The translations under genes and the position numbers were made by a program. Shown here piece after piece: positions 9,601 to 12,600 of a stretch of DNA of 64,000 nucleotides. Location of the stretch: assembly GCA_965112155.1 (NCBI GenBank), contig OZ218107.1; one strand, 5' to 3'. Each line of letters begins with the position of its first letter. The first letter of the stretch is position 1. The stretch comes from Podarcis liolepis. Taxonomy: Eukaryota. Below the pieces are notes generated by a model. It saw nothing but the letters and a program-made list of their open reading frames with translations. It ran no database searches and was not told the DNA's origin.

Positions 9601-12600
9601 TCACACACGACACGACACCCGGGGTTTCTCAGTCACCTGGTTCTAGATGAAGAATAGGAAAGTGTTGATAGAAATAGGCTCTCTGAACGTTCTGCATCTC
9701 TGCAACAGAGACGTCAAAGAAAAACCCAAGAAAAGAGATAGTAACAGTGAGAGTCAAAGCAGATAATCCAGAGTGCAAGATACCTAATGGCACTGGAATA
9801 AGCAAAGAAATCCTTAGAGGCAATGCTTGGTTTCATCTCATTACATCCCATATTTGGATGTGGTAAAGTACAAGGAACATCGGTTTGAATGTTATTCTGG
9901 GATGCTGCCTGCCCCTGACATTTTGACCCTTTTCCAATCTCTCCTCAGTTCAGCAACAAGAGGAGGATAGTATTCAGAATAAAGCATACACAAGTTTTGG
10001 ATCACACTGATCACTGTCATTTTAAGGGAGTGGAAAGCCCCTGTATATAAAGTGCTTGAAGATATTGGATAAGCACTCTTTAAGAAAAATATGCAAGAAA
10101 TCTGGTTACATACCATCTTTCCACAGTTCAGAAACAAATTTATCAGAGGACTGGTGTAGCAGAGTAGCAATGTTGTCATTAAGGGGGTCCATGTTCTTCA
10201 TCAGCCACTCATCAGCTTTGTAGTCAACCTAGAGAAGAAATTAATTCATTAATATTAGCTACAAAAGATTAACCTTGCCTCAGTATTGAGGAAAAAGAGG
10301 CAAAACTATGATTGTCCCACTCTTGAAATGGAACATGATTCTAGAGATACTGTACTAAGTGGTGAAGCTTAATTATAGCTTATTTGTATGATTTAACTCA
10401 GAGTAGATCACATAAGTCAATGGGCTTCAAGTCATGACAAACGTAAGTTACCAATCTCAGTGGGTCTATTCCAGCTATGACTTAGTTGGATACCACCAAT
10501 GTGAATTATCCAGAGCACCTCAGAAGTGCTAGTCAACAAGTGCTTAATCTGCCACTGTGAGAAGAACGGAAAGGCTGGATCGGCAACAGTTCATGTGCCT
10601 TGCCATTAAATGGAAAGCCGTAGACTTTTATGGGAGCACACTGCTTCCTTTCCTAATGTGGAACTTGATCACTACATAGCTTTCACTAGCCTAAAACAAA
10701 CCCTCAAATCAGCAGGACCTAAATTGTCCACAATTCAGTAGCACCTCTTTGCTTTTCTTTCTACTACAAATATAAGGGCTTACCTTGCCAGCATAGTGCA
10801 TAATGCAGAAATCAGCTTTGTCTTTTAGCTGCTTTGGCTTCTGAAACTTGGGATGAGTGCCTTGCTCCTGCACCACCTTTTCCACAAAGCTTTTATCAGT
10901 AGCTTTGGGGAACCAGCATTCTTCATCCAGTAGGGCCAAGATGCCAGGAGGTCCAGCCTGTGTTAAAAAAAGAAAGCAGGTGGAAATCAGCACTGCTATA
11001 AAGATTCATGGTTTTGAACAAGAAAAGCGCACAAAATGAAATCTATCTATTGCTCTTAGCAAAGCAGCTTTCCAGACTGGCCATAAGCAGTCTCTAAAAC
11101 TATCCCATTTCTTGCTCTTTTTATATACCATTTTTCATAAAAAGAATTCTACATTTAATGCGTTTTTGCAAGTTTATTCAAATTAAATTTATTATCTTTT
11201 ATTTATAACCTGCCTGCCTTCCACCATGGAACCCAAGGCTGCTTACATGCTGTTCCCAGGCAGTTTCATACCTAGGGACTAACCATATTCAACTACCTCA
11301 GCTGCAGCAAGGTGGTGGCCTCGTATGCTCATAAGACCACACTTATGTAGATAAATTCAGCTTCTTAGCATAAATCAAGAGGTTTGTGCATGAGGGCCTT
11401 AAGCTCACTGCAATAACTGTTCTGTACTACCCAGGACACAATGCATGAGTCACTCACCGGTTTTTCTATAAGATCAATGCAGGGCTGCAGATCCAGGCCA
11501 AAGTCAATGAAGTTCCATTCTATGCCCTCACGCTGGTATTCTTCTTGCTCCAGGATGAACATGGTGTGATTGAAGAGCTGTTGCAGCTTCTCATTCGTGT
11601 AGTTAATGCACAGTTGTTCAAATGAGTTCAGCTAATTCCGGAAAAATAGAACAATGCAGGTCTAGGTGAATGCTGCCCACCAAACGGTTACCTATTTCTG
11701 AACCAACATTCAACTACAGTTTCTCCACTGCCTTATTTACTGAGATGGAGAATGCATCTTGTTAGGTGCTTAGCAGCACTCATTTGAGCATCAATTCTAA
11801 ACTTGGAGCAGCAGACATCTGCTCTCCACTTAGCAGCAATCCTGCATGCCAATTCTTACTTTGCTGAAAGAAAGAGTATTTGACAGCAAACATTATATTA
11901 AGGTTATTTATTTTGTTCCAAAATCATTTTTAAACACAGTCATTTTGGATTTTTCAGGCATACCAAGACCATAATATTACATCTAACGCTGAAAACTAGG
12001 ATGGGACCCTGAGTTTGCTCATGTTGGCTGAAGTGTCCCCTGAGGGGAGTTGCACTCATAATGCCCCCACCAGTAGATGGGGAAAACGAGAATTGCCAAT
12101 TCCCATCCCATGCACCCCTTTCCCCCCCGGTCTAGAGGGTTGGGGGACCTCTGGGGTACAATAAGACACAGTGCAGGGAGGGGGGTGATCAGCACAAACC
12201 GCCTGTTCCTCTTTCTGCTAGAGGGATGCTCTGCTGGATCTTGGTCCAGCCCATGGAAGGAGACCTTCCATTTGTGGAACCCTAGTTAAGATCCAAGCCA
12301 CAATCTTTCAGAAGAGGAGCTTACACTGGACTTTAAGAATGTCTCTAGCTTCTCTTCAAAAGAATTCTATTTTGTTCCTACTTGTTGCCTGGGGTCAATG
12401 AAAAATTATGTGATACGAGTACACTATGGTCCAGTACATCAAAGGTGGGCTCCCTTGACTTCCTTCCTGGTTGAGCCCTGGGATGAAACTGGAAGGACCA
12501 CAGTTCAAGTGGAGGTTCTTAGCTGACATCCCTCCTTAAGCAACACTAATATCCAAACACAGTATGTTGGAATTTAAAAGTGTGGCTGCCCTTTACTTAC

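Follow-up and report, generated by a model that had tools for sequence, protein, structure and literature searches.

A short open segment lies between two motor-domain exons of a myosin heavy chain gene in the lizard Podarcis liolepis. Which gene does it belong to, is it an intact alternative exon, and is an exon of this kind already known? We addressed these questions in a window of 64,000 nucleotides, by which we mean the whole stretch of DNA analyzed (contig OZ218107.1, assembly GCA_965112155.1). The window contains no N.

Identity of the gene and layout of the cassette

The gene is the MYH9 orthologue. Three exons were searched singly and unspliced against the solved structures in the PDB. 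The first exon matched human Myosin-9 residues 519-576 at the top, with 121.3 bits versus 110.7 bits for Myosin-10. The exon upstream of the segment matched residues 577-614 (73.3 versus 71.2 bits). The exon downstream of it matched residues 616-679, with 62/64 residues identical (126.8 versus 107.5 bits). Three consecutive exons thus rank Myosin-9 first and match contiguous residues, and the gene is therefore MYH9, as the preliminary description of this DNA had assigned it. The insert was absent from every solved structure.

The features of the region are collected in Table 1. The two constitutive exons, called exon 15 and exon 16 after the mouse numbering, join at WKD|VDR in actin-binding loop 2. 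The downstream exon reads V D R I V G L D Q from 7792 onward. The cassette opens within a GAG codon, at the second base. The 21-residue translation is taken from window:9638-9700 on the minus strand. The 21 residues are added between D614 and V615 (human Myosin-9 numbering). The preliminary description had reported a stop-free, phase 1-1 segment of 63 nt with a good acceptor and a GTGACT donor, inserted at the WKD/VDR junction of loop 2. We confirm its coordinates, phase, peptide and splice signals, and the insertion site matches both the exon layout and residues 614/615 of the human protein.

Table 1. Features around the MYH9 cassette in the window, with identity to an amniote contig (L001, see text)
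Feature	Coordinates	Strand	Description	Comparison with L001
Upstream constitutive exon (exon 15)	10228..10114	minus	38 residues ...SELWKD + 1 base; donor gtatgt	87% identity
Candidate branch point	9747..9753	minus	ctctcac, 54 nt upstream of the cassette; assigned from position and sequence	
Pyrimidine-rich tract and AG acceptor of the cassette	9700..9735	minus	...tttttctttgacgtctctgttgcag; ends ctctgttgcag	
Cassette exon (probable A2)	9699..9637	minus	63 nt, phase 1-1, stop-free, between two motor-domain exons	63/63 bases identical (also in L002)
Weak 5' splice site	9631..9636	minus	GTGACT; +5 is C, not G	
Conserved intron stretch 3' of the cassette	9483..9630	minus	GU-rich run tgtcgtgtcgtgtgtg (9617..9602) and ctagagccatgcaagaaa	
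First 100 intron bases on each side of the cassette		minus		78-82% identity; downstream side 81/99
Conserved intron 3' end ahead of exon 16	7793..7926	minus	from the alignment to L001	
Downstream constitutive exon (exon 16)	7792..7599	minus	opens tt gat cgc = V D R; (V) + 64 residues	90% identity
Introns		minus		about 50% identity

Twenty-one open codons in a row are unremarkable by themselves. About one third of random segments, (61/64)^21 = 0.36, are also open over this length, which is what an accidental intronic frame flanked by accidental splice-like signals has in its favor. However, the identity of the segment across species already refutes this explanation, and all results on homology and conservation described below oppose it. 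The peptide matches mouse A2, a bird Myosin-9 and MYH10 B2, and all 63 bases recur in another amniote. The segment is therefore beyond chance, an origin to which we assign a negligible probability.

Two other places in the window differ in base composition. The stretch 14001-16000, within an MYH9 intron, has a GC content of 0.50 and a strong negative GC skew (-0.26). In 58001-60000 the GC content reaches 0.52, which may mark a CpG-rich stretch close to the 5' end of the gene.

Comparison with mammalian exon A2 and with the inserts of the paralogues

An exon at this site is known in mammals. In mouse and human, NM IIA2 arises when the MYH9 transcript includes a 63-nt exon, A2, at loop 2, as shown experimentally (Das et al., J Biol Chem 2023, PMC10480317). 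The first nucleotide of exon A2 is position two of a GAG codon, and the mouse exon encodes EMQSTQRAYFYRRFPILHLES (PMC10480317). A2 lies in the intron that separates exons 15 and 16 (Mallick et al., J Biol Chem 2026, PMC13158602; from the same laboratory as PMC10480317). A2 also appears among the NM2 inserts in a review of 2024 (PMC11335295). The preliminary description held that MYH9 is usually treated as insert-less, a view that is outdated since A2 and NM IIA2 were described (PMC10480317, PMC13158602, PMC11335295).

The lizard segment agrees with exon A2 in gene, intron, length, start within a GAG codon (second base) and insertion at WKD|VDR. A direct comparison of the peptides found 16/21 residues identical to mouse A2. 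The five differences are N4/S, V5/T, Q12/R, H13/R and P21/S. In addition, the primer specific for mouse A2 ends in 17 consecutive bases that recur unchanged in the lizard exon.

The splicing signals are also shared. The A2 donor is GTGACT in mouse and human, as it is in the lizard; the MaxEnt score of 6.60 is the published value for this hexamer, where RbFox3 is also proposed to make contact (PMC13158602). With a C>G change the score of the donor rises to 10.67, and inclusion is rescued (PMC13158602). The A2 acceptor scores 9.02, and the branch point in mouse is ctctcat at -54 (PMC13158602), compared to ctctcac in the lizard at the same distance. UGCAUG was not found for A2, whose inclusion is driven by RbFox3 more strongly than by RbFox1/2, MBNL1 and NOVA1 (PMC13158602). 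Our search for (U)GCAUG near the lizard cassette agrees with this report, as the motif is absent from the 1.5 kb downstream and was not found upstream either. The same paper presents a 10-species A2 alignment and a companion B2 panel that includes alligator and chicken (PMC13158602).

Taken together, the location in MYH9, the 63-nt length with phase 1-1, the related peptide and the shared donor, acceptor, branch point and lack of UGCAUG identify the segment, with a probability of roughly 90%, as the lizard orthologue of MYH9 exon A2, the alternative cassette that yields the NM IIA2 heavy chain. The segment is real, intact and strongly conserved. It belongs to a kind of exon that is already known and is not new.

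We compared the cassette with the inserts that the paralogues carry at this junction. A second word search brought up MYH10 fragments that are spliced and carry the B2 insert, which reads EIQNIQRACFYDNITGLHDPP in a bird (P0005) and EIQNIQRASFYDSVSGLHEPP in Theria (P0006, with 16 further residues after it). The lizard peptide is identical to each of them at 11/21 positions in an ungapped alignment (E.QN.QRA.FY.....LH..P), a level reached by 0/100,000 shuffles. The B2 homology proposed in the preliminary description is thus supported, and the relatedness of A2 and B2 had already been pointed out (PMC10480317). B2, the 21-residue neuronal insert of NM IIB2, occupies the same site and has the same phase and length as the lizard cassette. 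Similar to A2, it abolishes actin-activated ATPase activity and motility (PMC10480317, PMC13158602). However, it belongs to a paralogous gene, its C-terminal half reads DSVSGLHEPP or DNITGLHDPP, unlike the lizard peptide, and its donor is strong, with a MaxEnt score of 8.77 in contrast to the weak A2 donor (PMC13158602). The earlier remark on the C-terminal half of the lizard peptide, which is more hydrophobic than that of B2 and without the B2 serines, is correct.

The same search returned a teleost fragment, P0007 (hypothetical protein, Albula glossodonta), in which WKD is followed by EIETFQRACFYETVSLPSDHTGERT. This insert is B2-like. Its second half is different and the insert seems longer, and 6/21 of its residues match lizard A2.

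The C2 insert of MYH14 (NM IIC2) is likewise a neuronal cassette and occupies this junction of loop 2. It is longer than the lizard cassette, 99 nt by the account of the paper and 33 residues in human, and by eye it is unrelated to lizard A2. Its effect is the opposite, a motor that is constitutively active without light-chain phosphorylation (PMC10480317, PMC11335295).

These comparisons bear on whether the gene could be a paralogue (MYH10, MYH11 or MYH14) and the segment the known B2 or C2. The near tie of the upstream exon between Myosin-9 and Myosin-10 would allow it, but the two other exons clearly favor Myosin-9. The flanking exons prefer Myosin-9 over Myosin-10, and the peptide is closer to mouse A2 than to B2. 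Compared to the B2 peptide EIQNIQRA(S/C)FYD...GLH(E/D)PP, the lizard peptide shares only the 11 residues and is homologous, not orthologous. In addition, the NCBI name for a bird fragment with the identical peptide is Myosin-9. We therefore consider a paralogue very improbable and retain the assignment to MYH9 A2.

The descent of A2 and B2 from one exon older than the split between MYH9 and MYH10 would be the simplest reading of the comparison, because site, phase and length are the same and 11/21 residues are identical. An origin of the exon before that duplication had been suggested in the preliminary description, and the data fit it.

Conservation of the cassette and its intron flanks

A word search of proteins that used the open frame surrounding the cassette in the genome returned three short proteins. 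In KFP49439.1 (Myosin-9, partial, from Cathartes aura), which is a gene model and not a cDNA, ...SELWKD is joined directly to the identical 21 residues. P0001, P0002 and the cluster member P0004 are read-through frames in genomic contigs of other species, in which the lizard peptide is followed, as in the lizard itself, by GD and a stop. The P0002 peptide differs from lizard A2 by a K at position 4. The A2 peptides of mouse and human are 85.7% identical (PMC10480317). Compared to this value, the 21/21 identity between the lizard and the bird makes sauropsid A2 look more strictly conserved.

A related-locus search of metagenome contigs gave no match. A degenerate DNA pattern then found two metagenome contigs that are nearly identical to each other, L001 (Ga0065711_1010704) and L002 (Ga0181612_174242). 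These JGI contigs contain host-type DNA, with MYH9 exons of another amniote. Their residues are the same as those of the lizard in the three exons compared, and their cassette peptide is of the sauropsid type. We do not regard either contig as human.

At the DNA level the cassette is conserved more strictly than the exons on either side (Table 1). The last 12 bases of its acceptor are also identical in L001 and L002. In the downstream exon, 19/64 third codon positions (about 30%) differ between the lizard and L001. At this rate, the probability of no change in the 21 third positions of the cassette is 6e-4. A silent third-base change is possible in 20/21 of the cassette codons.

Conservation extends into the introns. 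The longest conserved block of the region is 9782..9483, which measures 300 nt, is 81.6% identical to L001 and contains the cassette. Together with a conserved stretch ahead of exon 16 (7926..7793), this is a pattern that regulated alternative exons usually show. Judged from these alignments, the exon and its intron flanks are under strong purifying selection.

A second block, 7926..7595, aligns to L001 at 79.6% and reaches well beyond the borders of exon 16. The ~130 nt before this exon (7793-7926) are ~80% identical to L001, whereas the other constitutive exons are little conserved past their borders. On the other side of the intron, the GU-rich run tgtcgtgtcgtgtgtg, 20 nt downstream of the A2 donor, and ctagagccatgcaagaaa following it are almost unchanged in L001 and L002. 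Both are candidates for intronic elements in splicing control, and neither is discussed in the mouse papers.

The exon could also be an unused relic in the lizard, in an island that is kept for another reason such as an intronic MYH9 regulatory element. Conservation reaches ~240 nt into the introns, and an enhancer could also explain this. However, the frame, AG acceptor, GT donor and branch point are intact and are identical or nearly identical to those of the exon used in mouse and human. The peptide is kept in the bird at all 21 positions and in mouse at 16, and the mouse differences keep the frame open. We also looked for an embedded RNA gene as the reason for the base-level identity and found no Rfam family, and a search for a special RNA fold found none better than shuffles (z = 0.06). 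These results argue against a relic, which we consider very unlikely.

The exon may be constrained beyond its protein code, as all 63 bases are kept while ~30% of third positions change in neighbouring MYH9 exons and the flanks, with the GU-rich run, are kept over ~240 nt. Such constraint could stem from a dense code for splicing control around A2 that is as yet unmapped and older than mammals. This proposal is tentative, and we think it has less than an even chance of being correct.

Consequences for myosin IIA in lizards and other amniotes

From the orthology and the purifying selection, we infer that the exon is included in this lizard, with a tissue pattern and an effect on the motor like those in mammals. 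In mouse, A2 makes up ~15% of MYH9 mRNA in the brain and ~5% in skeletal muscle (PMC10480317). Phosphorylated mouse HMM IIA2 has a Vmax of 0.017 s-1, compared to 0.38 s-1 for IIA0 (PMC10480317). HMM IIA2 does not move actin, and it slows IIA0 in mixtures (PMC10480317). The preliminary description had expected a kinetically distinct myosin IIA in the lizard. The mouse data agree that the isoform is different, but this wording is too mild for such a loss of activity.

The mechanism proposed from the mouse and human data can be carried over to the lizard as follows. The exon between exons 15 and 16 would be skipped in most cells, because the donor GUGACU is weak. In neurons, its inclusion would be promoted by RbFox3 and less strongly by RbFox1/2, MBNL1 and NOVA1, and a trace of inclusion would be expected in skeletal muscle. 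Inclusion would place 21 additional residues in actin-binding loop 2. The resulting IIA2 myosin would still bind actin and co-assemble with ordinary IIA. With almost no actin-activated ATPase activity and no motility, it may act as a brake in mixed filaments.

As a discovery, the lizard exon carries little weight. A2, NM IIA2 and their splicing control are published, and bird gene models contain the exon. The analysis makes two small additions, the whole A2 architecture in a squamate and an exon that is base-for-base identical in another amniote. If the exon is indeed constrained beyond its protein code, NM IIA2 might be of greater importance in sauropsids than expected from how little of it is made in mouse. 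The lizard exon also supports the descent of A2 and B2 from one exon that would have been present before MYH9 and MYH10 separated. Its architecture and its base-for-base identity in another amniote support the view that an inactive 'brake' isoform of myosin IIA may be an old, selected feature of amniotes and not mammalian splicing noise.
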